Below are positions 1,513 through 44,600 of a stretch of DNA of 64,000 nucleotides, piece after piece. Source of the DNA: Styela clava. Its lineage: Eukaryota. The notes under the pieces were generated by a model. It was not told where the DNA came from, searched no databases, and saw nothing but the letters and a program-made list of their open reading frames with translations. Position 1 is the stretch's first letter. The number at the start of each line of letters is the position of its first letter. The stretch is from NCBI RefSeq assembly GCF_964204865.1, contig NC_135253.1:5394001-5458000 (forward strand). The letters are read 5' to 3'. The position numbers and the translations under genes are program-made.

Positions 1513-2557
1513 TATCATATTATAAAGTTAATGCATTGGATTCGTCCCAATCGCATAAACTTCACTTGTGTGTTCATTTTCTTGAAAAACGCAGCTGGTG
1601 CAAGGATGATCTTCGAACCTTGAACTTTCCGGTTGGAAAATTTCTGCTCTTGTAACCAGCGTCTCCGAGCGAGGCACATCACATTTTAACCAGTAGAAAC
1701 TAGTGGAACTCTCTGTATGCTGCAATACGACTCCATCTTGTTCACCAGATACATAGATTACTGGCGTTGGGCTTTACTGGAGAATACACCAAACTCACTT
1801 ACGAATTAATTCGCGTCCAGACAGTCACACCTGAACGAAACAAATTGCTGAAGATTCTGAGATTGCTGTGGAGTCGGGCTTTCTAATTTCTGCGTTTGTG
1901 AGTTGATCATATTATATAATGTATACGGTATCCCAGGCTTTACAATCAACACTGAAAAACTGAAATAGATTATGTAGTCTACTGATTGATAAAAAGGGCT
2001 GATATACAGGTATAACTGGCAGCCTCCAGTCTGCCAGTGATCGCTGAAGGTAAACATGGGAAGGTAAAAGAAGCCTTCGATACAGTTATACTGTAGCACA
2101 ATAATACAAGAATAATATTATAGACACTAGGACTCACATAAGTTGAATCTTTTTAAAATTAAGTCAAGAATTAAAGTGGCTTGGATAATTGAAATATTAG
2201 ATTCAAAAAAACTTGTTCTCTTAATAAAGCATTAAAGTGTCTTTGTACAGCCTGAAGTAGTTTACTGTATTGCATTATTATTTATAACAAAGCTCGTTGC
2301 ATAATGCACCATGTTTTATTTTGTTATTCAAATTATCGAAACTCAAGTGTCGGATGGGAATAGAGAAAAAATATATTTGTAGGTAATTATGCCATTGGTG
2401 CATTTATTTTTGGTATGTTTCATCATAGAAAAATAGGAAACTAGCTAGGTATTTCTACCTTCCTTTTATTAGTAGAAAATTACATCTTGTTTATTTTTTT
2501 TAGACATTCTCGTTTCTGCTTTATTTTTGGAGTTTGAACAACATAAGTAAAACTGAA

Positions 2558-5500
2558 ATGGAACGCCATCCCACTATTTATCTCAAAAACCTCCAAATTT
2601 CTGGAAATACTCGTGCAAGTTGTCTTTTCCACAGGTTGGTTGTCTATGGCTGCATATAACATGTGCTTTTACTTTCGAGGTTAGGTACTTGGGATAAATA
2701 TTATTGTCTCTAAAGCAATTTTCAATCCTACTTCAGCACTGAACTATGTGAGAAATAAATTTTAATAACAATAACTTCGGCACATGCAAGCTTTCTGTAA
2801 TTGTCTGTTGCCAATGTCAATTTGATGTTTTTGAGTTCTGTCAGAACTTTTGACTTTATTATAATTATTCCCATCAGAAATCTGAAATTCTCGATAAATC
2901 TAAACTGTGGGCATAACTTACATATTATAACAAGCACTCACAAATACCTTCAGGAAAAGACTTGAAGACTTTGAGTCGATGTATGTTCAAAATTTGAATG
3001 CTCATTATGGATGTATCAATGCTCTTGAATTCTCTAATGAAGATGGAAATTTTCTTGCATCAGGTGAAGTGAGATAGTGTTTTCAATAACGATGTAGTAA
3101 TTTAGTAGGTACTCCTGTAGTATGCATCCAGGTTAGGGTTAGGATATAATTTTATTCCAATTTTTCTCATTTGAAGTTATATTACGAGTTCAGGGACTGT
3201 TTGTGTTACCCAAGTGAATATCCCCCTGCCCATAGGTCAGTCTGTTTACACAACTTGATGCAAAATAGGCGAACAAAATTTGTTACATTCGTATTGGTAC
3301 ACACACTTCTGGAGCGCCATTTCGTATGCTGCTTGAATATAACAAAATAAATAAAAATATTGGTTTCTTATTAGAGTTATTGGAATAGTCGGTCATACAG
3401 CATCCATTATCACAAAAGTACAGATGCACGAATAAAGAGTTGATTTCAAGTAACACCAACTGAGAGTTAAATTGACTGTTATTAGTATTATATTGTGAGT
3501 TAACTCCTTATTAAGATATTTTTTGCTTTTTGTAATGTTGTCTTGATACATGTATGCAGGTGGAGATGATAAAAGAGTTGTACTTTGGAACCTGACACTT
3601 GCAATGTTAAAACCGAACTATCAACCTGTGGTAATGCATGCGACTCATCTTTCCAACATTTTCTGTTTAACATTCAATATGACAGATGACAAATTGATAT
3701 CTTCGGGTGAGAAAGAGTATATATGTTCAAAAGTTGAAAGTGTATTTTGGCTACATCAGGGCTTCTCAAACTGGGCCGTCTGCCCTCTTGGGGGCCGCAA
3801 GCAGCAGACTTCACTTGGTACCATTTGTGATGGTTGCATTAATTAACTGTAATGTGTTCAATTCTTTGATTGATTTTCATGCATATTATTTTACTTTTGT
3901 TAGTTTTTTATTAATAAAATGGTTAATGAAATAACCGTGCCAACGGAGTGATGAAAAGGGAATCACATATCATTATGGTATGAGAACCACTAAGTTAGTT
4001 CGATTATAAAGCATGTTTATAAATTGTTATATTTAATTGAAGTCATTTATTTTCTGTTAATAGAATGCCGATTGTAGGATTTTTTAATGTACGGTACTTT
4101 TTTTATTTTGAATTCCACGTTTTGATTGATAAGTCCTATGGACTTTTAGGTAATGATGGTCAGGTAATTCTTCACGACTTGCACACAAATAATCTGGTGG
4201 ATGTTTTCATGTGTGACAACTCTGTGTATGGATTATCTTCTAGTCCAAGTAATGAACATTTGGTTGCTGCAGCTTGTGAAGATGGCACAGTTCACATTAT
4301 TGACACCAGGTATCTAATTCCGAAGAATTATTTTAGCACATTAACAAACTACTTTCTGTTATTTTATGACTGGTATTTGTGCATATATTCTTAAGTATCT
4401 GTTAGTAATTGATTATTTAGTATCAGATTGATAAGAATGGCAGATTCATATGTGGTATATATTATGAAGTTACCGGCCTCGTTTCGAGCAAATGCTGATG
4501 AATGATACATTGAATGATTTTTGGACTATAGTACTATGAAACAGATCCTAAAGTTTTGTAAATGTAGATAACACATTTTCATTTTATAACTGTCTTTTTC
4601 AAGGCTTACTAAAGCAGATGGACTTTGTTTGGCACGGAGATCATCAGCTTTTCATAGTGTTATGTTTAGTCCAGTAGATCATCATTTGATTGCAACATCA
4701 CATTCCAGAGATGGAATGGCATTATGGGATATAAGAAGCCCAAAAAAGTATGATTTAGCTTGTGTTTTCTACTAATATTGAATGCAAAATATATTCATTA
4801 TCTCGGTGTTGCAGATTCAAAATTTAAAAATATAAATGTTTACTTTTATGAATTATTACTGCATTAATCCTCTAAAACAGTAGAATTCTCAATTAATATA
4901 CACAAGAATAAATCTTTCAAAGTCGACTGCGTTAAATTCAGTCGACAAAAATCAAAATTTTCGAAAATTCTAGTATTTCATCATCTTATGTTTTTAATTG
5001 TTTCATGATTATAGGGAAGTGCTGCATTATGGACAAAGAGGTTCAAAACAAAGAGCCATGAGTGCAAGATTCAACAAGACTGGGAACCAATTACTTTGTC
5101 TCCGACGTCGACAATGTCTTGCCTTGTATAATATCAGTGATAGTGTAAGTAAAATGACATCTTTTATGAAGCTCTTGTTTTGAACTTCATTCATTTTTCA
5201 GACAATTGATGGAGTTGACTAAAAATATGTTTATACTGTATCTGACTATCTGTATGTGTATATCGTAAAATTCATTTCTTGAAAAAATCTTTAGCTGATT
5301 GAAATCTAAGACAACAATGCTTATCTGAAAGCTGTTGCTGGAATCAATTGTAATTTGTAAAGTGATGGGAATAATGATACAATTGTATTTTGCTTATTGT
5401 ATGATATATTTTTAAAATACCATACATATCAAGAACGTGGTATTTTTCAATTTGCTCTTTTTTTATATGGTTCAGAAAAGTATTGCTGAATTTGATTGTG

Positions 5501-8500
5501 ATGGATATTCAAATTACTGTACAATGAAAAGTTGCTGTTTTGCTGGTGACAAAGATCAGGTATGTGTCTGCGTTACTTCTATAAAAAAAAACATAGTAAT
5601 GTTCTAAGGTATATGGACCAAATTTTGCATATCGAGTTCGCTGAAAAGATTATCGAACAAGCAATACGGAGGTGGTCAAGCAATACCATATGTTTAATTG
5701 GGGCTCCCGAAGTATGCGAACCAAGATGTCGGACATCAGAATGTAATATGTGTACTAGGTTAGGGTTAGGCCATAATTTTAGGTATAAATACTACGAGAG
5801 GCTCTTGGCTCGTCTTCGAACTGATAATAGGACTAAAATAAGGAAAATTGGAAAAAAATTATCGCCTAACCCTAACCTGTTACCCATGTTACGCTCCGAT
5901 GTCCGTCATCTTGGTTCGCATACTTCGGGAGCACCGTTAAATTGATGGAGGAAAAAATAAATAAGAGGAATAGCCTTCTAGAGACTTTCTCCATCATTTG
6001 AGTAGTGAAAATTTTTACATCATTGCGAAGGAAAATGATATTTTCATAACAACAACAGAAATTTAGCGAAATGAAACATATGTACACTTTTTGTCAAAAA
6101 GTTATGGTCTCATATGCTGTTTATTGCACTTTTTTCCTGCAGTACAATTATACTACTTTGAGGTAATGCTATTACATAGATATATCTGGTGGTTGGTATT
6201 TGTTTAAGTGAAATTTTATATTAATTTTCAATCGACAGTATATTGTATCTGGATCTGATGACTTCGGTGTTTACATGTGGAAATTACCTGGAGAATATGA
6301 AGGAAAACGTCAACATGTTGGCAATGCTTTCAAGGTCCTAAGAGGACACCGGTCTATTGTTAATCAAGTAGGAACTTATGTTAAATCTTTTTTGTAAATT
6401 TAATAATGAACGATCATTTGCAGCAACAGTATTAAAACTGTAATATAGCATTATTTAATGTACGGTATATGCTATTTCTTTTAGTGCATTTCGCTTTCTA
6501 TCAGTGTAATTTATGTTGCGTTTATTTGATTGACGAACTTAGGACAAATTGTAGACGTAGCCTCAAAATTATGACGAATCTTGAAAACGAGGACAAATTC
6601 ATTTAATAACACGCAAGTAGTGAGCAAATAATAACCTTATTATGGATGGTATTATGGAATCTGAGAAACAGGTTAAGGACCTGAGTTGATTCCTATTAGT
6701 ATGTGCCATCATGTTGAAATGCAAAAGTTCATGATTCAAGTCAGCAAGTTAAATAGTATCACATATGTACTTGGCCAATGATGCATGCAACCCTCAGCTG
6801 CTATTTTAGAAAACTCATTTTGAATTTATACTCTTGTTATTAGCATTAGTCCAGAAACAAATGTTCGGCACCTTAGTTATGGTGAGCTTCTCTGTCTGCC
6901 GGCTCTCACTAATTCGGAGCGTCCATTTAGGAAACTGGCATTGTAACGCATTTGATTTCGAATTGAAGTCCTGAATATTCATGGATTCGACATGAATCTT
7001 AGTCTGGATCAGAATCTTGGCCTATCCCTGGTGGGAAGCCCTGGTTCTACTGAATGAATATTGTTATTATATTATTGACTCAAAAGCTGTTTGTAGGTAA
7101 GGTTCAACAGACATTCAAATCTTCTTGTGTCCTGTGGTGTTGAGAAAATGGTCAAGTTATGGAGTACAGAGCGGTTACCTATGGGTGGTGGGGATGTTTT
7201 TCCAAGCTGTGAAAAACCTCGAAAACGATACTCTCACAATGAATACATCCAGCTTATATTTGAAAGGTTGGTAGCTCAATAGAATATTGTCTGTCCATTT
7301 GTTATATTAAACATTTCTTTGCTAGTAAGTAGTAAAGTACATATAACTGTAAGTAGAGCTCGACCGATATCGCTTTTTTGCACCGATACCGATAACGATA
7401 TATCGGCCAACTAGTGACCGATAACCGATATTGACATACCGATATCTACAACTCGAACCCGCAGTAAATACAAATAGAAAGAAACATTCAGTTTCAGTCA
7501 ATCAAAAGTTTATGTTGAAAAATAAAGCAGTCCTACACAGTGCTTGCGTCATTAATAAAAGTTTCGCAGCAAATAATAAGAACACACATCAATGCACAAG
7601 AGAAAAAAAGGCAGTCAGTAAAAAGCTTATAGAAGTCCATTTTGATCCATACAGTAGTAGGTGGGAGTAGGCTTGCACGTAATTTACGGAATTGTTTGGA
7701 GTTACGGAAGGGAAGTTACAATTTACGTAAAGTCGTAATTATTGGTCGAGCGCTTTCGCGTTTGAAACGTGCTCCTTCCAAGCAGTCAATTCCGTCGATT
7801 GTAAAAAATCAAAGTTTAACAAGTAGAAGAAGTTAGAGTTCCGGTATTCGCAGCCGTTTTGAGCCGGCATGACGCATTGCCACCCCGTTTGAGCGTTTGG
7901 TTTCACGGTCAAAACGATATTATTATTAGCGTTATCACCGTAACGCAATTAGCACCGACAGACTTTTTTGTCTTCACGATTTGGTATCTTTTTTATTCGG
8001 CGCTGATAATGATAAATAAGAATGTGCGATAGTTGATTGTAATTCCGAAAGGCGTTTTTTTTTTTCTTTCTCTCCGTGAAACAGACATGAAACGAATTTT
8101 ACCGCCGCTATAAGCGCTCCAAGGAGAGGAGGCTAGGCTACTTTCTTTTCCCGACTCAATCACTTTTATTAATACAAATCACAGCGCATTAAAAAACAAA
8201 ATAGAATTTATTAGCATTAATTTACAACAATTTACGGGTAAGAATTTATCGCCGGCTAAATAATTATTATTTGATTTAAATTTATCGCAAATAGTGTTAT
8301 AACATTTAGGCCGCGAAATGATTTGATATAAAATGGAGCTTGGTAATCGGAATATCGTCAATAATTCAGCATCAATAATTATTATAAAATGCTAACTAGG
8401 TAGCAAAGTCGGATAATGTAAAAAAACGGAGCAATAACAAGTCTTCGTCGCGAGGCAAGCGCAGGTATAATCAAACGAGAAAATACGCTTGTCGTTGATT

Positions 8501-11415
8501 AATAACTTAGAACCCCGAATTTTTTATTCAATACGAAAGTCGATTTTAAAAAAGGCAACTATCGTTTCATTAATATCCGTATACCATTATCGGTAATGAT
8601 AAAATTGATCGCATAAAATTGGGACGGTTAATTTGCGAACGTGATAAAGGAAAATCAAAGCCAACACAATTAAACAAGATAAAAATCAGAATAAATTCAA
8701 TTTGAATTCACTCCTTGGTATTTGTCTTTAACATCTGTCGCCGGCGTGTAGTACTGTCGGTAATATGAAAACCAAACTTTGATGTCCCATTCGGAAAAGA
8801 AGTGGATTCGAATGGTTTTTATGATAGGTTTAAACGTGTGAAAAAATATCGCAATTACGGGGTCATTACGTAATCAATTTTTCCGTAATTACGGAATTGA
8901 TTTTTGTCGATTACGTGCAAGCCTAGTGGGGACGCAGGATATTCGAAGGCGAGGATTTTGCGCCGCACGAAGAGAGAAATATAGAAGAGAACTCTCTGTT
9001 CATTGAAAGGCAAAATGAGAGAAGCGTAAAAAAGGAAAACGCTCGGCCGCAGATATTTCCCGGGGAAAAATACTCATTTTTTAGAACGTGGAAAAGCGAC
9101 TAACGCTGATATATATCGGCCAGATATATCGGCCGATTGGGCCGATATGATATATCGGCAAACACGCAATATCGGCCCGATATATCGGTTGGCCGATATA
9201 TCGGTCGAGCTCTAACTGTAAGGTTATGAATACTTTTAAGTAAAAGAATTGTTAAAGTAGTGTTCAAATTGTTTTTTTTGTCAATCTGTCAGAAGTATAC
9301 CATATGGGAATTTTTCATACAAGCTGCTATGAAAGACTCTCACATAACTAGGATACACTTTTTTGTTATAGGGATTTGACTTAGCCATATGTCAGTGGAT
9401 TAGTCCCATTGTATATGTCTCACAGAGGGGGTTATTCCAACATAAATTATATGATAATCTCATTTTCATAGTTCCGGAATGGTACATGATTATCATGCTG
9501 AAGATATGGAGGAAGATCCCAAAATGCTGGCATTTTTTGATAGTCTTGTTCAACATGAAGCTGACGATAGGACTTCCGATTCATCAAACTGTGATTCATC
9601 AGTGGCAATTCAGTTGTGAGTAATAGGTTTTTTTTTTGATTCAGTGAATCTGTTAGTTCCGCTTATTTTTTGAAGTATCTCTGCAGGTACACTAATTGGC
9701 CCGTTAGTTCTCAGTTAATCTTCACATTTCCATTTGCAACAACCTGCCCCAGTCTGGTTCCAACTGCGACCCACTCAGATAACTACGGTACTCCAGTTCC
9801 AATTCCTGGTTGACGAAAATTTTGATCTATCTCTCTATTTTTGACCACAAGGCTAGCCTTATATAATTTCATATTGAAAATGCTCTATCAAGCTTCATTT
9901 GTTTCTGCTGTAAATTTTGACATTGATTACCGCCATGAGGAGTTTGAAGTTCAGACTCACAATAGCTCAAAATTTTTTCTTCAGCTTTGACTCTTGAGAT
10001 TCCGGCTTGAAATCCAGATTCCTGTTCCGAAGGCCTGCTATGCTTCCATATCCTAATAAGGAAAATTAATCTCTCTCTCACTCACCAACCTAATTTTAAA
10101 CCTTTTTCTAGGAATGATTACTTCAGCACTCATGAAGAAAATACGACCAATTCAGAGAGGTAACCTACCTAATCAGAGGCAACTCATTTTTTCATAAAAA
10201 TAGCTACATACATCTAGTTGATGAATCATATTTAAATTCTTAATCTGGCTACAACTTGTCTTTAGCTTGACGTTATAAATAAAATATTTCAGATAAAAAT
10301 CACAAATGGTTTGGGGCAATATTGCAAGCCAGGCTGCTCACAGTTTTATAAACAAAAATGCCTGATATAAAGTTAGCCCAGCATTTATTTTTCTTACTGC
10401 AATGTAAAACTTTTAAACTACAGTTTGACGAGCGATGATGGAGGACCTGCAAGTCTTGATACTTTGGGAATAGGTGATGCAACAACTAATAAATCAGGTT
10501 AGTATTTTTTAGTTTTACTCATTTTCAAATTAGCTATTTAGCCAAAAAATTCACAATTTTGCTCTGAATAATGTCCAAGCCAAGCAAACACTGAAACATA
10601 GAGCGCTACTATGTTTTGGAAGTTTTCAAATATTTTTGACGTGAAAATAGCTCTTATAATTCTTTATGCACTTGGCACATGACAGTGCATTGTACTGGTG
10701 ACCCCAAAAGCAGAATCATTTGAAACATAATCTGGAGAAAACATAACTTTGGTGTAGATCTTTCTAGATTATTGAAACTTTTGGGTGCATTCACAATTCA
10801 CATGCAAACAGAAGTTAAATGTATTTTTTTTTCATTTTTGTAGGAGTAACTCATGGGTTATGCTTCTTTTTTTATTCATTCTTTTAGTTTAACCCTACGA
10901 TCATTACCCTCTTATATTTATGTCCAATGCCTCTTCTTCACTGCTTCGATGGTTATATTGATATCAAATTAACAATTATAGCTGCGCAAAAAGCATCGCA
11001 AAAGAAGCTTCGGAGATTACGAGAAAAGGTGAAGGAGGATAGTGATTGGCGGGTACAAGACTTTGAAGAGAAGTCCAGTTCTGAACTTCCTCGAACATCT
11101 TGTAGTAACTCTGACGAAAAACTTGAAGATGACCAACCTACCACTTCGACATCAGTGTCGAGCGCGAAAGTAATTTCTCCAGTAAAGACAAAACGTAGGA
11201 GAAAAGAGCGAGAGTCTGTCAAAGCGTGTTCAAGCGATACCAGTGATTCTGAAAATGAAGCAGCACGGACTAGACAAAGAAATGCACACAGACGTGTAAG
11301 ACGGCCATTTAGAATATCACAGTCGAGTGATAATGGTAGTCCTAGTACGAGTGGATTATGTTCGAGCACATTTTCATTTAATAACATTGATCCACATTCC
11401 AATGGCCAATCATGA
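2558..11415 (+). CDS. DCAF5: DDB1- and CUL4-associated factor 5 (WDR22), WD40 protein, 13 coding exons
   Basis: Phase-consistent GT-AG exons 2558-2634, 2954-3063, 3560-3706, 4150-4309, 4604-4747, 5015-5144, 5476-5559, 6239-6367, 7097-7266, 9472-9615, 10112-10159, 10424-10497, 10982-11415. Motifs AHYGCINALEFS..ASGGDDKRVVLW, SAFHSVMF, CTMKSCCFAGDKDQYIVSGSDDF, LRGHRSIVNQVRFN and EEDPKMLAFFDSLV match DCAF5; Ser-rich tail. Confidence 0.95.
3107..3319. mobile_element. MITE, 6-bp-TSD family B (contains GGTTAGGGTTAGG)
   Basis: TIR-like ends AGGTACTCCTGTAGTATG / CACACTTCTGGAGCGCCA; flanks TTTAGT/TTTCGT; internal sequence shared with the 15223-15439 and 28348-28574 copies. Confidence 0.8.
3757..3992. 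mobile_element. Degenerate hAT/Charlie-like MITE
   Basis: Ends CAGGGCTTCTCAAAC / GTATGAGAACCACTA resemble Charlie TIRs; no TSD retained. Confidence 0.45.
5699..5936. mobile_element. MITE, 6-bp-TSD family B
   Basis: 38-bp TIRs GG(G/T)GCTCCCGAAGTATGCGAACCAAGATG(T/A)CGGACATC matching 36/38; inner inverted GGTTAGGGTTAGG / CCTAACCCTAACC; flanks TTTAAT/TTAAAT. Confidence 0.9.
7354..9214. mobile_element. Non-autonomous hAT element in a DCAF5 intron
   Basis: Perfect 17-bp TIR TAGAGCTCGACCGATAT; exact 8-bp TSD ACTGTAAG at 7346-7353 and 9215-9222; dense subterminal CCGATA/TATCGG repeats. Confidence 0.93.
7668..8925. mobile_element. Second hAT-like element nested in 7354-9214
   Basis: Perfect 16-bp TIR TAGGCTTGCACGTAAT; subterminal TTACG/CGTAA repeats; imperfect flanking repeat GGTGGGAG/GTGGGGAC. 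Confidence 0.85.
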
Positions 11416-37257: not shown

Positions 37258-38939
37258 ATTTCCACCACTTTAATCCAAACAATTATTAATTTTTTTTTTT
37301 ATGGTTCCAACAAAGTGAAATTTTCAATAATTAAATAATAAATAAGATAATAAAATTGAATCCATGTTCATCGAGTTGATTCCACAGTTTGATTTTAATT
37401 AGTTATTTTTTGATTGAAAAAAAAAGAGTTATGAAAAGTCATAAGTTATTGCATATCATGTCGAGTTCGTTTGTGTAAGAACATTGTTTTCTAAATTTTT
37501 CCATGTTTCTCCTTGCTAAAAGAGAGTTTCTTATCTTCACTATAACATTATTGACATTTCAGCATTTGGTACAATATTTTGAAAAATTACAGCATTGCGC
37601 TCCAACCATATTTCAGTATTTTATACCGTGCAGTACACAATAACAATACAATAGCATTACGTTCGAAAATTGATAAATGAGAATTAAAGTGATGATTTAA
37701 GTCTAATAAATTATTTATTATTAAAATTTGTTTGCGAAAAATTCCCAGTCAATTCCTAGCACTGTCAGACTGTAGCACTAATGCTCAGGTATAATTCCAG
37801 TCTTACTACTTACTGAATAAAGCGAGAAACAGCCCAGATGAGAGGAAAACAGCGCAGAAGAAAGGGAACATTTTTCTTTCATTATTTATTAGCGTCCTTG
37901 AAATTTTAAACAATTTGATGGGAACCCTAACACTAATTAGTATTGGTTTTACATGCGATACGTCTGCTATTAATGGGAATCAGCGGGAAACAAACGCCAT
38001 TCACCTTCAGTAAGTAGGCTAGCGCTGCGCTACACAGAAACAACAGTAACGAGAACATGTTCGTGTATTACGCTGGAAGGCTGAACGCAAAAGAGCGACT
38101 TATGGCTGACTTGTCGGGACGGCGGGACAAGACGCTAAAAAGCGGTACTGTTCCGCCCAAAGTGACTATAAACCAAGTGAGGACATGCATTGGTAACGTT
38201 ATAAGCGCTCGTGTGACGTCACACCAGCCATTTTGTGTCCAGAGTTCTATCGCTGTATGATCCTAACCAGGGAGATGAAACTAGTCTGGAAAGCCACGCC
38301 CACAATAATAAAACAAACAAAGTTATGCGCGTTAGGAGTTTCTGCAGCTTCACGCTCCATTGCGGTCACTTGATTTGCTCGGGGATTATTGAAGAGGGTG
38401 GTATGTGCACAAAATATCTCGCTGTCGCCTATATTCTTAGCTCAGCAGCCTATAGTATTTCATTAAGTTGGTTCAATACTTTAATTAAATGCCGGTTGTC
38501 CATCTTAAGCTCGGTCTCTTTAGTTTATTTCAAGATAGATTAGATTCGGCTTCAACTAGTATTTCCCCCTCAAGACAACGCAGGTACGGTATGGTAACTT
38601 GGCGTTCTATGAACCACCCCAGTACTGCAATATTCTACCCGATTATTGTAACCTAGGGCCTAGGCTACTTTATTTCTTATGTTCTGTGAGTCCGGTACTG
38701 GGTTACGATCTTTATAGTTACACACCCTCCATTCTAGAAGATATAATTCTACTATTATTACTTACGACTAACATACCAGCACTATAGTCTGAGAGTATTC
38801 ACAGATTTACCAAACACCAATTTCTTTTTCCAAAGTCAAACCGTTTTATTTTTTCTTTACGTTTTTGTATTACTTTTTTAGAATTGCATAATTTGTATTA
38901 TAGTGCTATAGGCTATTTATTCACAATCACTCATCAACA

Positions 38940-39790
38940 AGAGTAATTGATGTTGCATTCCACAATGCGATAGTGTCAGTGGATCTTGCACCCTGTTTTT
39001 GCCATCATCCAAGCGGGTTTGTTCCGGTGAAAAATTTATATGGGCAGCAGTGTTCCCTCTAAGGTGAGCGCGTGTGCACTGCAAGTTTATGCACATGATT
39101 TGATTGCGTAATTTTCAAAGTCCTTGACGTTATCCGCTCAGACCATCTCGCTAGCATTTTCTGGGAAAGTGTTGGAGAAGTGGGATTGGGGCTTATTACA
39201 GATGGACTTAGTGCAAACCGTAAAATGTTCCATGAGTTAAATAATTTGAGGTTAACTTTCCCATATACATGTATCAATGGTTCTGATCATTTCATTTACT
39301 CAAAACAGTAAGCAATAATGTGTTTGCGAGTCACGCTGGTGGAATTCGCCTATTGAAAAAAGATGACCATTTTCGTGCAGTACCATCTTTTTCATCCAAA
39401 GAGTTCCACTCCTGCAAATTGACGGAATCCCACTTGTGCTTACAAAGCTACCCAAAAGTGTGTGTCAAATATGCAGCCCAGGTGCTATCTAAGACTGCTG
39501 CAAGATTGATGCAGCAGAGAGGTGGGCCAGAACTCTTGGTCAGCATGGTTTGATATTATGAATACTTGGCCAAATTTTGGATATAAAAAAGGGTGCTCCC
39601 GTAATATGTGTACCAAGTTGGGGTTATCAGGTTGTGCGCTATCTTGGTACACATACTACGGGAGCGCCTAAAAAATGCTCCGACCATTCCATAGCATTGA
39701 TGAGTGACTGATTTAGCTTGAAAATAATTTTCATTCCAGGAATACGCAACTGGAAATCATCTGTCGCAGAGACAAAAGAGTTCTAGATAT
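38940..39790 (+). pseudogene. Decayed P-element/THAP9-type transposase
   Basis: Ordered motifs LASIFWESVG..ITDGLSANRKMF, HLLKTVSNN, KLTESHLCLQSYPKVCVKYAAQVLSKT and WFDIMNT; broken by frameshifts, deletions and a MITE insertion. Confidence 0.85.
39591..39669. mobile_element. Short family B MITE nested in the P-like element
   Basis: TIRs GGTGCTCCCGTAATATGTGTACCAAG / CTTGGTACACATACTACGGGAGCGCC; AAAAAA on both flanks. Confidence 0.85.
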
Positions 39791-39969
39791 TCCGTATTTT
39801 TATTATGCAACTTACATTGCCTATTGCCATGAAAATATACTATATTGCAATGAAAATTTTGTTATGAAAAATAGATTGTTTGTTTAATTACTGCTAAAGT
39901 AATAAAACTGGAATGACATCTAAACGCACTACCTTGCAAAATAAAGTGAAAAGAGATCATGCTCTTCAT

Positions 39970-41668
39970 CTACATTTATTTTTTAGTAGTTTTCGTAGGG
40001 ATAAATTCTGTTTGATGGCACCTTATTTTTCTAAGATGTCCAGCATGCTAGTATCGTTTTGGGCGATACCAAATGATTCTATATTAAAATTTTCAAAAAC
40101 TGTGGCTGTAACATCTTCATGAGCATAGTTTAATCTAAATTCAATTTCGAGCAGCTTGGACACTGGGCAATGGCACGGTTAAGCGTCCATATTCTGCATT
40201 ACTGCAATCATAGAGTCAGTTATCAAACAGTCCGGTTCGGGAGAAAATAATGACTGAATTCTTTTGCAGTCTTCGGGGTCTTAGCATCGTTTTTGCTTTC
40301 CTAGTAGAATGAACCCAGCAATGTATTGGATTATATGGACCTCATCGTCATTCAATATGATAGAACTTGAATTCAGTAAATCTGGAAAACATAGGGAACA
40401 GGTGTGTAATAGTAGGATATCGCAATATTGATTACCATGAATGTCAATCAAACACGGTCAATACTTGAAATTAAATTCGATCAAGCGCCTGTTAAGCTAG
40501 TGCGCACAATGTATGAATCAGGTAGTGCTTTATTGCCTACATTCAAAACCAATATTGCTTAGAAAACAGTTGCGTTTTATATCCTTATGTATGAATAAAA
40601 ACCCAATTAAGCAATTTTTGCCAGTTAGTCATATTGTCCGTAAATTATGGTATCTAAACATACTCAAATCCAGACAAATATTAAGCACCACACCTTTCGT
40701 TTTATCCATTTCTTTGGCTGTGAATCTATCAAATAATTACCCGACAGACTGGAGGGTATAGTAAACCTGGAATACTCTGTTCCAATGTGAGGAATAACGC
40801 TAACTGCATCACAGCTGAAAGATAACATTTGATCACTCAGGACTTTCCTTCAGCAACAATTGCAAGTATTTGACCACATTTGGTAAAATAGGGACAGTGG
40901 CTGCAATGATCTTCCCCACACTAATATCTCTGCCTAAAAATAAAAAAAATTCAAAATTATTTTGACAGATTCATCCCATGGTGTTTAAAAAAATCTGCAC
41001 TTCATGTTTATCTTGAGTTGTGGAAGTTGTATTAGTAATCATGGAATTTATGTAGGGGTCTATAATTATGTAAATCTTACCTTGTTTGTGAATATGTTGA
41101 GCCAAAGATGCCACGCTGGAAAATAATAACTTTTGACACGTCGAGCACCTTGAAATAAAACATAGGTTATTTTTTATAAATCTCAGAATAGGTTGTTTAT
41201 TAGCAAAAATATTGTCATGAAAATATCACATTTAGGTATGTAGAATAAAATCCAGAAAATATATTGATGGTAAGATAATTGAATGCATGATCTGTTGGGG
41301 TCTTGCATTAATCTCTCCTAACACTTTTTGCCCTCTGTCTGTCTGTAACTCTCTTTTCAATAGCTGTCTTACTTTTGCTCACTCAAGGCAGCAAGGTAAA
41401 CTTTTCTTCCATTGACTCATCAAGATCTATGAATACATGTCAGTTTATGATCCTCTAACATGAATGAATCTAGTACGGTACAGGCAGACAGGTAATGTCT
41501 GAATATATCATCAAATTCATAATCTGATTCAGGGATTTAAACTCGGCAGCTCTGTCTGTCATATCTCAGCACATGATAACTGCTCCCTGAATAGTCACCC
41601 GCTAATGGAAACATACTGATAGTATATATTTAACGTATAGAAATGGTAGGCTTACCTTTATTAGCCAT
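39970..41668 (-). pseudogene. Second, spliced gene of the P-like element (C2H2-like N-terminus, YIAGF/GRLTVP C-terminal motifs), disrupted
   Basis: GT-AG bounded segments 41656-41668 (ATG GCT AAT AAA G), 41383-41426, 41081-41148 (CSTCQKLLFSSVASLAQHIHK), one starting ~40933, ~40664-40713, and a long one from 40381 (DDEVHIIQYIAGFIL..YGRLTVP); in-frame stops and frameshifts. Confidence 0.55.
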
Positions 41669-44600
41669 AATAGCCACTGATTATATAATACCTTGAGTCC
41701 GATGCGACCAACAGATATGGTGAAACTGCAGCAAAACGCTGGGAACTCGAGTGGGCGTTAACGAATCAAGTTGCCGCAATGGAGCGTATCGCGTCAGACA
41801 CTCCTCATTGGTCAAGGCTTTAGTTGCGCATCATGGTATGTTAGTCGTTGATCCTAACTAAGTGATTTAAACCTGCGATCGTTAAACAGCTGATTAAAAA
41901 AAAACGATGCTCAATAATTCGGAACAAACTTTCGCAATGGCAAAACGAATGAACATTCTTCTGAAAAATTAATTACCCGCAGATGTTTAAAGTCATCCAA
42001 CTAAATCAACAACTCAATAGAACCAAAATATTAAATAAAATGATACACATTTTAGTATTAAATTATTATAAAATTCCCGATGTAAGTATCGCTACTTGCA
42101 CAGAATCTATTTTAACAAAGTGACAGAACCACAATACAAATTATACTGCAGAATCTTGCACTATTTTTGCGGTACATGTCATGATATTAAAATATGCGTA
42201 TCGCAAATTTTCAACAAGGTGTACATTGCCAAAATAATATTAAAAAAATATACTACATGCATGGAATGAAGGATAACGGCGTATATCAAGTTTACAAGAA
42301 CATCTAATAATCTGGAGTGTATAAAATATCAAATTATCTATTTTATTTGAGCTCTTGCCGCAGGTCCACGAGCATACCGTTTTTCAATAATTTTATTTGT
42401 CTCCTCTTTTGCGTGAATATTTAACCTTAAACTGAGAAAACGTTTCAAAATTTTAAAAGCGATGTTGTGGCAAGATGGTAAATTATATTTCAAGCAACCT
42501 CATCTGTCGGAAAAGTAACAGGCGAAAATATATTATAAAAAGCATTAGTATTTGCGCGAAATATAGTTTATACTTCGCGCAAAAATACGATTGCTTTTTT
42601 GGATGGGTGGCATAAATATTGGGTAAAACTATCAATTTTCAAATATTTATCGTGTGTGTAAGACCTTAAAGGGGTTGGTAACGATTGTGGGTATTCATCG
42701 GGATTGACACTTTCCATAGAAACAAACAAACAATTTGAACCCCGTGTCTTTTTAGGGTTACCCCGGAAACGAAACATCAAGGCTAATTTTTCACTGTTAG
42801 ATATCGATAAAATTACAATTAAGTTTTATCAACGAAAATGGAGAAGACATGATGGCGTCGCTAAATCACCTAGTAAATATTTCACATTTTCCGACGCAAA
42901 AGAATCGAAACATCCTGCCAATAGTAAGTTGCTAAGAGCTGCAACGCCAGTCGAGGCGGCTGGTTTTTAAATTTTGTACTTTATAATGTACATGCTTCGA
43001 TGAAATTCATTACGCCGCGCAATGTGCTAGCCATGAGATCGTTTACATTCTTTAAATTTTGGAGCAACTGTTGCAACAGTTCGTTAAATTAAGAAAAATT
43101 TTCCCGTGAAAATTCATTCCATCATCTTTTGGAATGACTAATGTAAAACGCAGACTTTAAACTTTCGGCATGGTGTGAACAGGTATCATAATACCAGTTC
43201 AAATAGTACCTGATTTAAACGTATGCATTAGGTTAATGACGTTTCACACTTGCGAAGGAAAGCGATATGTGTTCTTCATATAGAACGTTGCTACGTAATT
43301 GCGTAACGAAGTGATTAGGGAACGTTGTTGTTTAACTCAAGTTGGCGCAGTGGACATGTCAAGAATTGGAGAACATTGAATGAAATAACTTATACCGGTA
43401 CAATTTTACTGGTGCATGATAAATTCTATCTAATGTCGAAAGCTATCTTTAACCTCTGCAAATGTGTCGGTGTCATATTGGGTTAAAACAAGAACAAATC
43501 GAAGTTTTTGTTATTATTTCAAAAGCTTTTCAAAAAAATTCCACGCTTCTCAATTTTGCAGATTATGATAATCGCAACATTTTATCTCCATCTCATAGTT
43601 ATAATTTGTCTCCTGGTTGTCTTTCAAACAATATAAAACTTATCTGCATATAATTAAGGTTCGTGAGATATGAGGTTTCAAAGTTGCATAACGGGATGAT
43701 AAGATAACTATCGCAACTTTCACGAAACCGCACGATACCAGTATGATTCCACGAGGCAAATGGCAAAAGAAAAATGAAATTAACCGAATAAAATGCAAAA
43801 CAGTAAAAAATCGCGTCCGCTATGCATCATTGGACTCGGTGTCTCCACTTGGTTTATAGTCACTTTGGTTCCGCCTAAAGCGGGACGTATGGTAAGTGTA
43901 GCGTGTAGCCATTACAAAAATCCCAAGGTCAGTGTTAAAATTTCATCGAGTACAATATAATTAGATTAGATAGATATATTTAGCAATGCCGTACTGTCCA
44001 CAAAAGATCATATCTACTACAGGTGCCAGTAGTTTGATTAAGATATTTGTGCCCGTCCCGATTAAATCATAATCGTGATCATGACTGATTGTGTGCCGTG
44101 TGGCAGATTACAGCAATTTACCGAATTCGACAAATTGAGCCGCGCTTGCCACACTGACTCCGCCGTGTCTACCACTCAGATTCTTTTTAAGATATAACCG
44201 TTTGAAAAATCCCAAGTTCTTATTCTGGACAAAATACGAACGATTGAAATTTGTTTTATTGTAATAAAAATTGTTTAATCATATTTACGGTTTATTATAT
44301 ATACTTTACTCTAATTATCTTATATATCGTCACATACCGAGAAAAAATCACCAAATTTTGTGTTTTACAATGCCTATAAAAAAGCGATTTTAATCTACCA
44401 CGAGTCTGCTAAAACAAAACGTATGGTGTTATCCTTGGTTTTATGTTTTAGTTTTAATTTCTAAAATGCCGCTTTTCAATCAAGAAATTTGGGTTGCGGA
44501 TTTCCCTTTTTAATAAATATTTTTAGATAGATAGATTTATTGATTTGTCAACCAAAACAAATATAAATATGAGGGCATACATACAAATAAATAAACACTG

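Follow-up and report, generated by a model that had tools for sequence, protein, structure and literature searches.

A P-like transposon family of the ascidian Styela clava with two convergent genes, the second of which probably carries the transposase C-terminal domain absent from the first

A stretch of 64,000 nucleotides (nt) from the ascidian Styela clava (assembly GCF_964204865.1, contig NC_135253.1, positions 5,394,001 to 5,458,000 of the forward strand), called the window here, contains at 38268-41850 a dead, non-autonomous copy of an ascidian P-superfamily transposon. The autonomous relatives of this copy probably have two convergent genes, of which gene 2 carries the C-terminal domain (CTD) that is absent from the transposase encoded by gene 1. 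P elements and THAP9 are a textbook single-gene transposase system. Taken alone, the copy in the window is just a dead transposon of the usual sort; what makes it interesting is the family to which it points. A preceding sequence-only reading of this DNA had proposed a dedicated second gene, convergent with the transposase gene and interrupted by introns. This proposal is borne out by intact versions of the gene in three divergent lineages and by two GT-AG introns that are removed in RNA-like contigs.

The genome was searched in six frames with the two frames of locus L037 (gene 1 and gene 2). Long open frames were found in the loci L040, L041, and L042, all arranged tail-to-tail, with the following identities to the L037 frames.

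C18 (L040): gene 1 64%, gene 2 44%
C2 (L041): gene 1 55%, gene 2 33%
C19 (L042): gene 1 52-55%, gene 2 35%

The stop codons of the two genes lie 17 nt apart in both L041 and L042. The copies on C2 and C19 have open gene 2 frames of 284-300 amino acids (aa), and the copy on C18 has an open last exon of 212 aa and an NCBI model of 310 aa. Throughout the genome, a gene-1-type match was found to face gene 2 within 3 kilobases (kb) at 26 of the 31 gene 2 loci. None of the other five loci is in tandem; one had picked up the gene 1 of a neighbouring copy, and four are without a partner. All 57 gene 2 rows and 58 of the 128 gene 1 rows were used in this count, the matches of 29-36% to other P families and redundant weak rows having been dropped. 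Gene 2 exists in multiple copies on many chromosomes and diverges in step with gene 1. The gene 2 segment is also present in every family copy that spans this part of the element, which disposes of the possibility, raised together with the first proposal, that other copies lack it. Its presence in all spanning copies, together with the 26 loci facing gene 1, indicates that the arrangement is not due to chance.

In the gene 2 protein (about 277-310 aa), a C2H2-like finger is followed by a helical region and then by a homolog of the P transposase CTD, the homology covering the C-terminal 150 residues. Exons and contiguous open reading frames (ORFs) were searched separately, and the full-length gene 2 sequences are database proteins. 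An intact canonical P transposase of 813 aa in the same genome (L038), with PF12017, PF21787, PF21788, PF21789, and PF22824 and with its CTD in cis, aligns to gene 1 over residues 237-596, and its residues 638-713 match gene 2 on the opposite strand, in the last exon (tblastn, E 1e-5). When an alignment of 21 gene 2 sequences (A1) was compared with the CTD of this transposase (residues 647-805 of 813), hhalign gave a probability of 92.9% with E 3.7e-7, and the A1 profile matched PDB chain 6p5a_B of the Drosophila P transposase complex (6P5A/6PE2) at E 4.6e-6 in hmmsearch. The AlphaFold model of the gene 2 protein has a predicted local distance difference test (pLDDT) score of 83 and a predicted template modelling score (pTM) of 0.59. 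Its residues 123-265 superpose on residues 617-734 of 6p5a_B with Z 11.8 and a root-mean-square deviation of 2.7 A (112 of 118 residues aligned, 27% identity). This chain ranked first among 48,161 chains, the next having Z 8.2, and the all-helical fold is the same; it also ranked first in Foldseek, with a template modelling score of 0.72 on the target. Precomputed PF22824 labels exist for the gene 2 proteins P0002 and P0004. These comparisons support the view that the C-terminal domain of gene 2 and the CTD of P transposases (PF22824, THAP9_C; 6P5A chain B) are homologous.

The sequence-only reading had described the product as a zinc finger fused to a paralogous transposase C-terminal domain and had suggested structure prediction. 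The fusion is supported by the C2H2-like finger at the N-terminus and by the CTD homology in profile, hhalign, and structure, the predicted structure being the one that superposes on 6p5a_B. Of the word paralogous only the homology can be retained; the domain is not an extra copy, because in this clade gene 1 itself is devoid of a CTD. The spacing of the finger is C-x2-C-x12-H-x3-H in P0012 and P0039, C-x2-C-x12-H-x4-H in P0002, and ends in H-x-H in the window family. Pfam C2H2 models on gene 2 proteins remained below their cut-offs (best E 1.1e-4), and in the model the finger appears as two short strands and a helix (residues 10-33, pLDDT 65-80). The helical region between the finger and the CTD has about 80 residues with the motifs W-W, YF, and FSxDG(I/V)xxIP and has no clear relative. 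A homeodomain-like assignment of the N-terminal helical region was set aside, the structural matches of only Z about 5 being taken as noise. An interpretation of the middle exon (..FSCDAV..IP..) as a degenerate ribonuclease H (RNase H) C-terminal motif was likewise unsupported by Pfam or hhalign.

Gene 1 in the intact relatives encodes a THAP domain, a helix-turn-helix (HTH), and an RNase H domain with a guanosine triphosphate (GTP)-binding insertion. In the relative at C6:18972000-18990000 (L037 and L039), the gene 1 part is an open frame of 366 aa, and PF21787, PF21788, and PF21789 are all above their cut-offs in the ORFs of both L037 and L040. At L042:3525-4331, PF05485 (THAP) was found with E 5.6e-6 and 27.5 bits against a cut-off of 23.9, and this THAP exon begins 35 nt inside the left inverted end of the element. 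In L037, L040, L041, and L042, the gene 1 frame stops after the RNase H C motif, without a CTD. In the last three of these, it ends 45-60 residues past that motif in a common tail (..KGSNV..; ..KLRKR..). The basic tail has the pattern ..KGSNV..W..G..S..LPKRKK and is located shortly past the third catalytic motif. Among 101 gene-1 relatives found in the protein collection, nine from other sources were read, one relative being only 36% identical. The CTD is absent from all nine, and eight, a protein of Clavelina lepadiformis among them, have the same basic tail. The two-gene family departs from the canonical layout of a single gene with the CTD in the same polypeptide; gene 1 frames stop before any CTD, and the CTD homolog is on the opposite strand. 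A scan of the whole genome for PF12596 gave three sub-threshold matches, none of which is at the element.

The expression of gene 2 was examined with contigs of four runs from three studies, which were guessed to be RNA and were placed on L042:3707-9706. The joint 8635>8717 (81 nt) is skipped in all four runs and the joint 8783>9383 (599 nt) in three of the four, and both have GT..AG on the minus strand of L042. The 81-nt intron is the one removed in the NCBI model P0001 (277 aa), and exon 1 of gene 2, whose transcription starts beside the end of the element opposite to that of gene 1, extends into the right inverted end of L042. Between L037 and a window-family copy, the ratio of non-synonymous to synonymous substitution rates (dN/dS) is 0.34 in the last exon, from 24 synonymous against 37 non-synonymous changes, and in the middle exon it is 0.36, from 11 against 16. 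Values of about 0.35 are consistent with past constraint on both exons. The same ratio on the near-identical pairs L040/L043 and L041/L042 was discarded, as there are too few changes for it to be meaningful.

Among 1.84 billion representative proteins, the 36 relatives of gene 2 at E<=1e-3 all have 53-332 aa, and none is a full-length transposase. All named relatives are ascidian (Styela clava, Ciona intestinalis, Ciona savignyi, Clavelina lepadiformis, and Phallusia mammillata), and NCBI annotates the homologs as 'uncharacterized protein LOC...'. One 90% cluster contains 22 Clavelina members, and the 15 that are listed sit on contigs of many different sizes. A metagenome scan for relatives gave one contig, L044, which with 1,492 nt is too short to show a neighbour and was not used. 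It can be seen from these results that gene 2 is a real, spliced, stand-alone gene in this family, with the splicing taken from runs guessed to be RNA.

Two further observations concern the transcripts. Record 9 of X3 (2,796 nt) contains a spliced gene 2 junction and then continues for about 1.9 kb, unspliced, through the 3' half of gene 1 in antisense (L042 5947-8784), and run X8 has separate contigs that terminate between the stop codons of the two genes, at 7887-7891. The convergent transcripts may overlap in antisense, although such contigs cannot prove a single transcript.

With the CTD lost from the gene 1 clade and a CTD homolog encoded by gene 2, the transposase looks split. The proteins of gene 1 and gene 2 would then assemble into one transposase, with gene 2 giving the CTD in trans, an interpretation towards which we lean slightly. 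Gene 1 would provide end recognition and catalysis, and gene 2 would contribute the DNA-contacting CTD plus extra DNA-binding parts. In Drosophila, according to the review PMC7776569, the linker that ties the CTD to the RNase H domain is flexible and disordered, and the CTD is packed against the other subunit and touches both transposon and target DNA; the 66-kDa form, which is short of the C-terminal third, has no activity and acts as a repressor. Detachment should be easy for a domain that already acts across subunits on a flexible tether, and for this reason the family is read as having a split transposase. Gene 1 alone would then resemble the CTD-less 66-kDa repressor form, and transposition would depend on the co-expression of both genes. 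The broader model is that ascidian P elements run on a natural two-subunit transposase, in which the catalytic protein works only when the finger-plus-CTD protein is docked, and in which co-expression of convergent, partly antisense genes replaces the splicing switch of Drosophila. We give this model an even chance. As to its origin, gene 2 could plausibly have arisen when the 3' exon was inverted long ago and then gained a promoter and a finger exon.

Several points weigh against this interpretation. The evidence for an assembly of the two proteins is their domain content. Most of the loci in the count of 26 out of 31 belong to one family and are not independent, so the independent evidence for the layout amounts to three lineages. 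The window subfamily spread although its copies are without the catalytic end of gene 1; without the third catalytic motif, it must have been mobilised in trans. The search for gene-1 proteins covered proteins of 213-677 aa only and gives no frequency of CTD-less forms. On the side of gene 2, the Foldseek match has a weak E of 0.14, and single gene 2 proteins searched against a copy of Pfam with hmmscan had no THAP9_C match at E<=1. The runs that show the splicing are of guessed type and their contigs are strandless. No spliced junction of gene 1 was found in the contigs of the four runs, which are unspliced across the presumed gene 1 intron. Outside this genome, the sole clue to a linkage of the two genes is a hint from pairs of gene-1-type and gene-2-type proteins on contigs of exactly equal size: P0005/P0057 (6286 nt), P0007/P0053 (3697), P0011/P0052 (5833), and P0051/P0055 (1,764,526).

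The main rival explanation, which we consider unlikely, is that gene 1 alone is the enzyme and that gene 2 is a regulator which represses or directs transposition by binding the element DNA or the gene 1 protein, the repressor or targeting partner of the sequence-only reading. The extra DNA-binding-like parts of gene 2 would suit such a role, namely the C2H2-like finger and the helical region with its weak homeodomain-like matches (Z about 5). The one RNA-like contig in which spliced gene 2 continues into 1.9 kb of gene 1 antisense sequence could also reflect antisense control. Protein repressors are a known product of P elements (PMC7776569); however, the known ones described there retain the N-terminal THAP part and not the CTD. 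Moreover, the CTD, which contacts donor and target DNA in the solved complex (PMC7776569), has been lost from the entire clade of gene 1, and therefore some source of a CTD is to be expected. The linkage of gene 2 to gene 1 has also been kept across lineages that are only 33-44% identical, which argues against a regulator.

It could further be supposed that the segment is a mere scar, the 3' end of a transposase having been inverted in a defective ancestor that then multiplied, with the upstream 'exons' due to chance. Gene 1 does stop where the CTD would start, the part it lacks corresponds exactly to the last exon of gene 2, an inversion would yield exactly the tail-to-tail layout, and the window family is non-autonomous. 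However, the open gene 2 frames of 284-300 aa on C2 and C19 are 33-35% identical to the C6 exon, and the copy on C18, 44% identical, has the open last exon of 212 aa and the NCBI model of 310 aa. The finger and middle regions are conserved, dN/dS is about 0.35 in the last and middle exons, and canonical introns are removed in four of four runs. Five ascidian species have annotated stand-alone homologs, and the end of gene 1 is a conserved basic tail, not a random break. The scar explanation is therefore largely refuted and very improbable. The sequence-only reading had itself named an inverted piece of the transposase's own 3' end as a possible objection. An inversion remains plausible as the origin of gene 2, but what exists now is an independent, conserved, spliced gene and not a rearrangement scar.

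Equally slight is the probability that gene 2 belongs to the host, as a domesticated P transposase CTD that was captured by the element or merely adjoins some copies. In its favour, the homologs are annotated by NCBI as ordinary 'uncharacterized protein LOC...' genes, and gene 2 stands without gene 1 in one truncated copy (C2:473936-474391). Against it, gene 2 sits in this genome within the target duplications and between the element ends, has copies on many chromosomes, and diverges in step with gene 1; in Clavelina, 22 members form one 90% cluster.

Compared with the Drosophila P element transposase and vertebrate THAP9, the two-gene family shares the THAP finger, the HTH, the RNase H fold split by a GTP-binding insertion, the 8-bp target duplication, and an all-helical CTD with YIAGY, GGLxxP, and KIRxxxxxK motifs. 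It differs in that the canonical CTD is in the same chain, as in the 813-aa example of this genome, whereas here it belongs to a separate gene on the opposite strand, in which a C2H2-like finger and an additional helical region precede it, and gene 1 has a basic tail at its end. Gene 1 resembles the 66-kDa Drosophila P repressor, made when the third intron is retained, in keeping the DNA-binding and most catalytic parts without the C-terminal third (PMC7776569). The fly switch is alternative splicing of one gene, whereas in the two-gene family the product of a second gene would serve as the switch by its presence.

Among other superfamilies, there are known transposons with two genes. PIF/Harbinger elements encode a transposase and a Myb-like protein, and ProtoRAG has convergent RAG1-like and RAG2-like genes. 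As in the present family, a single pair of ends encloses the genes for two proteins, of which one is catalytic and the other an accessory for DNA or partner binding, and ProtoRAG is also tail-to-tail. Their protein families are unrelated to those described here, and their second protein is not a detached transposase domain. No two-gene or split P element was found described in the literature searched, at the level of abstracts and with Repbase and the 2009 Ciona P-element paper, either of which might hold one, outside the scope; within that literature, the layout is new for P elements. If the split transposase is real, a CTD encoded by its own gene would be a natural domain-dissection experiment on the role of the CTD and on whether it acts across subunits, to which the cryo-EM structure points, and it would bear on how a transposon gates its own activity via a second product. 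The family also gives an origin for a set of 'uncharacterized' C2H2-domain proteins in sea-squirt genomes, and annotation that assumes one transposase ORF per element will misread such families.

The features of the window copy are as follows (approximate limits are marked).

38260-38267: left 8-bp target-site duplication, ATCCTAAC, the same octamer as at 41851-41858
38268-41850, plus strand: whole element, decayed and internally deleted, left end CAGGGAGATGAAAC..., right end ...TAGTCGTTG
38334-38375: left arm of the subterminal inverted repeat, 42 nt, 81% complementary to 41764-41805
38950-39062, plus strand: what is left of gene 1's first THAP exon, ..SN(stop)CCIPQCDSVSGSCTLFLPSSKRVCSGEKFIW.., after which comes the point of the deletion of about 1.2 kb
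39108-39731, plus strand: gene 1 remnant, interrupted by stops and frameshifts, that covers the last part of the RNase H N-terminal domain and the GTP-binding insertion domain, ..GLITDGLSANRKMFHEL.., ..KLTESHLCLQSYPKVCVKYAAQVLS..
39592-39668: small palindrome in the gene 1 remnant, 26-nt arms, 92% complementary
39964-40395, minus strand (5' limit approximate): last exon of gene 2, ..IIQYIAGFIL.., ..YGRLTVP.., ..NLSLRKLLKNKCR(stop), homolog of the P-transposase CTD
40690-40925, minus strand (limits approximate): middle exon of gene 2, ..GKIIAATVPILPNVVKYLQLL.. / ..MLSFSCDAVSVIP.. / ..RFTAKEMDKTKG.., frameshifted and with stops
41081-41148, minus strand: candidate zinc-finger exon of gene 2, CSTCQKLLFSSVASLAQHIHKQ, 68 nt from the AG acceptor to the GTAAG donor
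41656-41668, minus strand: candidate first coding exon of gene 2, ATG GCT AAT AAA G and then GTAAG
41764-41805: right arm of the subterminal inverted repeat, partner of 38334-38375
41851-41858: right 8-bp target-site duplication, ATCCTAAC

Gene 2 lies on the minus strand at about 41668-39964, contains introns, and is opposite the gene 1 remnant. The ATG exon with its donor, the finger-like exon, QYIAGFIL, and YGRLTVP, all of which had been pointed out from the sequence together with lesions, are indeed present on this strand. The 18-mer at 41668-41651, ATGGCTAATAAAG followed by GTAAG, is exact in 10 of 43 fetched loci, including the divergent C6 relative L037. A conserved acceptor (..CCATTAG) occurs 3' of this exon at about 41570, so that at least one further 5' exon is likely; from the exon lengths, exon 1 cannot be joined in frame directly to the finger exon. 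Both splice boundaries of the finger exon are kept in the five other copies shown, and the window copy has an insertion of 3 nt. A collinear finger exists in L037, P0001, P0012, and P0002. The middle exon is an open frame of 89 aa in L037 that aligns to residues 40-108 of P0001 (E 7e-11).

The last exon is an open frame of 185 aa in L037 and matches P0008, P0011, and P0039 by tblastn with E 3e-16 to 4e-13. Relative to its relatives, the last exon in the window has at least two in-frame stops, a frameshift, a gap of 6 residues, and internal deletions, and lesions in gene 2, which the sequence-only reading had noted, are thus present in both the middle and the last exon. QYIAGFIL is in the ORF 40281-40451 and YGRLTVP in another frame, which places a frameshift between them. 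Compared with L037, the window subfamily has lost about 26 codons near the gene 2 C-terminus (39964-40030). These hold the most conserved helix (..FYLKIRCxQKA..), which is kept in copy L026 and in the C6 relative.

On the side of gene 1, the family copies match the THAP exon of L042 at the THAP exon remnant. About 1.2 kb of other copies is absent from the window between about 39047 and about 39092. The remnant at 39108-39731 matches residues 39-251 of the 366-aa C6 ORF (tblastn), and PF21788 was found in it only weakly (E 0.019). The window copy has no RNase H C-terminal part, and all 26 family loci with a match stop by residue 280 of the 366-aa C6 frame. Ten short ORF pieces of the window gave almost no Pfam matches; the copy being too decayed for Pfam, better copies were analysed instead. 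The window copy is dead: gene 2 is broken, and the RNase H C-terminal part is missing from gene 1 along with about 1.2 kb.

When the Styela clava genome was searched at the DNA level with 38230-41880, dozens of copies were found on many contigs at 80-93% identity, of which at least 20 loci were fetched. In alignment to other copies, the similarity begins at 38263-38268 and ends at 41842-41856. When seven better copies were aligned, the left terminus at 38268 was CAGGG(A/G)GATGAAAC and the right terminus at 41850 was ..TAGTCGTTG, while the flanks, in AT-rich eukaryotic DNA at the window, differ entirely from copy to copy. Duplications of 8 bp were found in four of the five copies with both ends (the window copy, L021, L023, and L024, but not L022). 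The second gene had been placed inside terminal inverted repeats. It is within an element bounded by target duplications with the limits 38268-41850, but the ends of the window family are poor inverted repeats: the termini differ from each other, and the sole inverted repeat detected is the subterminal one of 42 nt and 81%. In the L042 lineage, inverted ends of about 90 nt and 81% at 3401-3490 and 9619-9703 enclose both genes.

Some minor observations were made on the ends and surroundings of the copies. A stretch of 15 nt at 38764-38778, about 500 nt inside the left end, is the perfect complement of the right terminus at 41834-41848, and in copy L025 a left end of 700-780 nt is present at both ends in inverted orientation, which suggests end-swapping or long-inverted-repeat variants inside the family. 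At the counterpart of the palindrome in L042 (5278-5506, self-inverted over 5278-5460), the depth of RNA-like contigs is 1600-5000 against about 40 nearby in four of four runs, and many contigs break there. This region is probably a very abundant short repeat, similar to a miniature inverted-repeat transposable element or a short interspersed element, that is transcribed or embedded in many transcripts. The same genome also contains a canonical, intron-less P transposase family with frames of 813-834 aa and the CTD in cis (L038 2168-4609, C6:11272000-11280000, and others). Several of its copies have identical domain scores, and to judge from sequence this family may still be active. Finally, a 288-aa ORF with CCHC zinc knuckles (gag-like; L037 3727-4593) adjoins the C6 copy, and a 625-aa integrase-like open frame (L027 2-1876) stands beside the C5 copy; retroelements are inserted beside or into copies of the two-gene P-like family.

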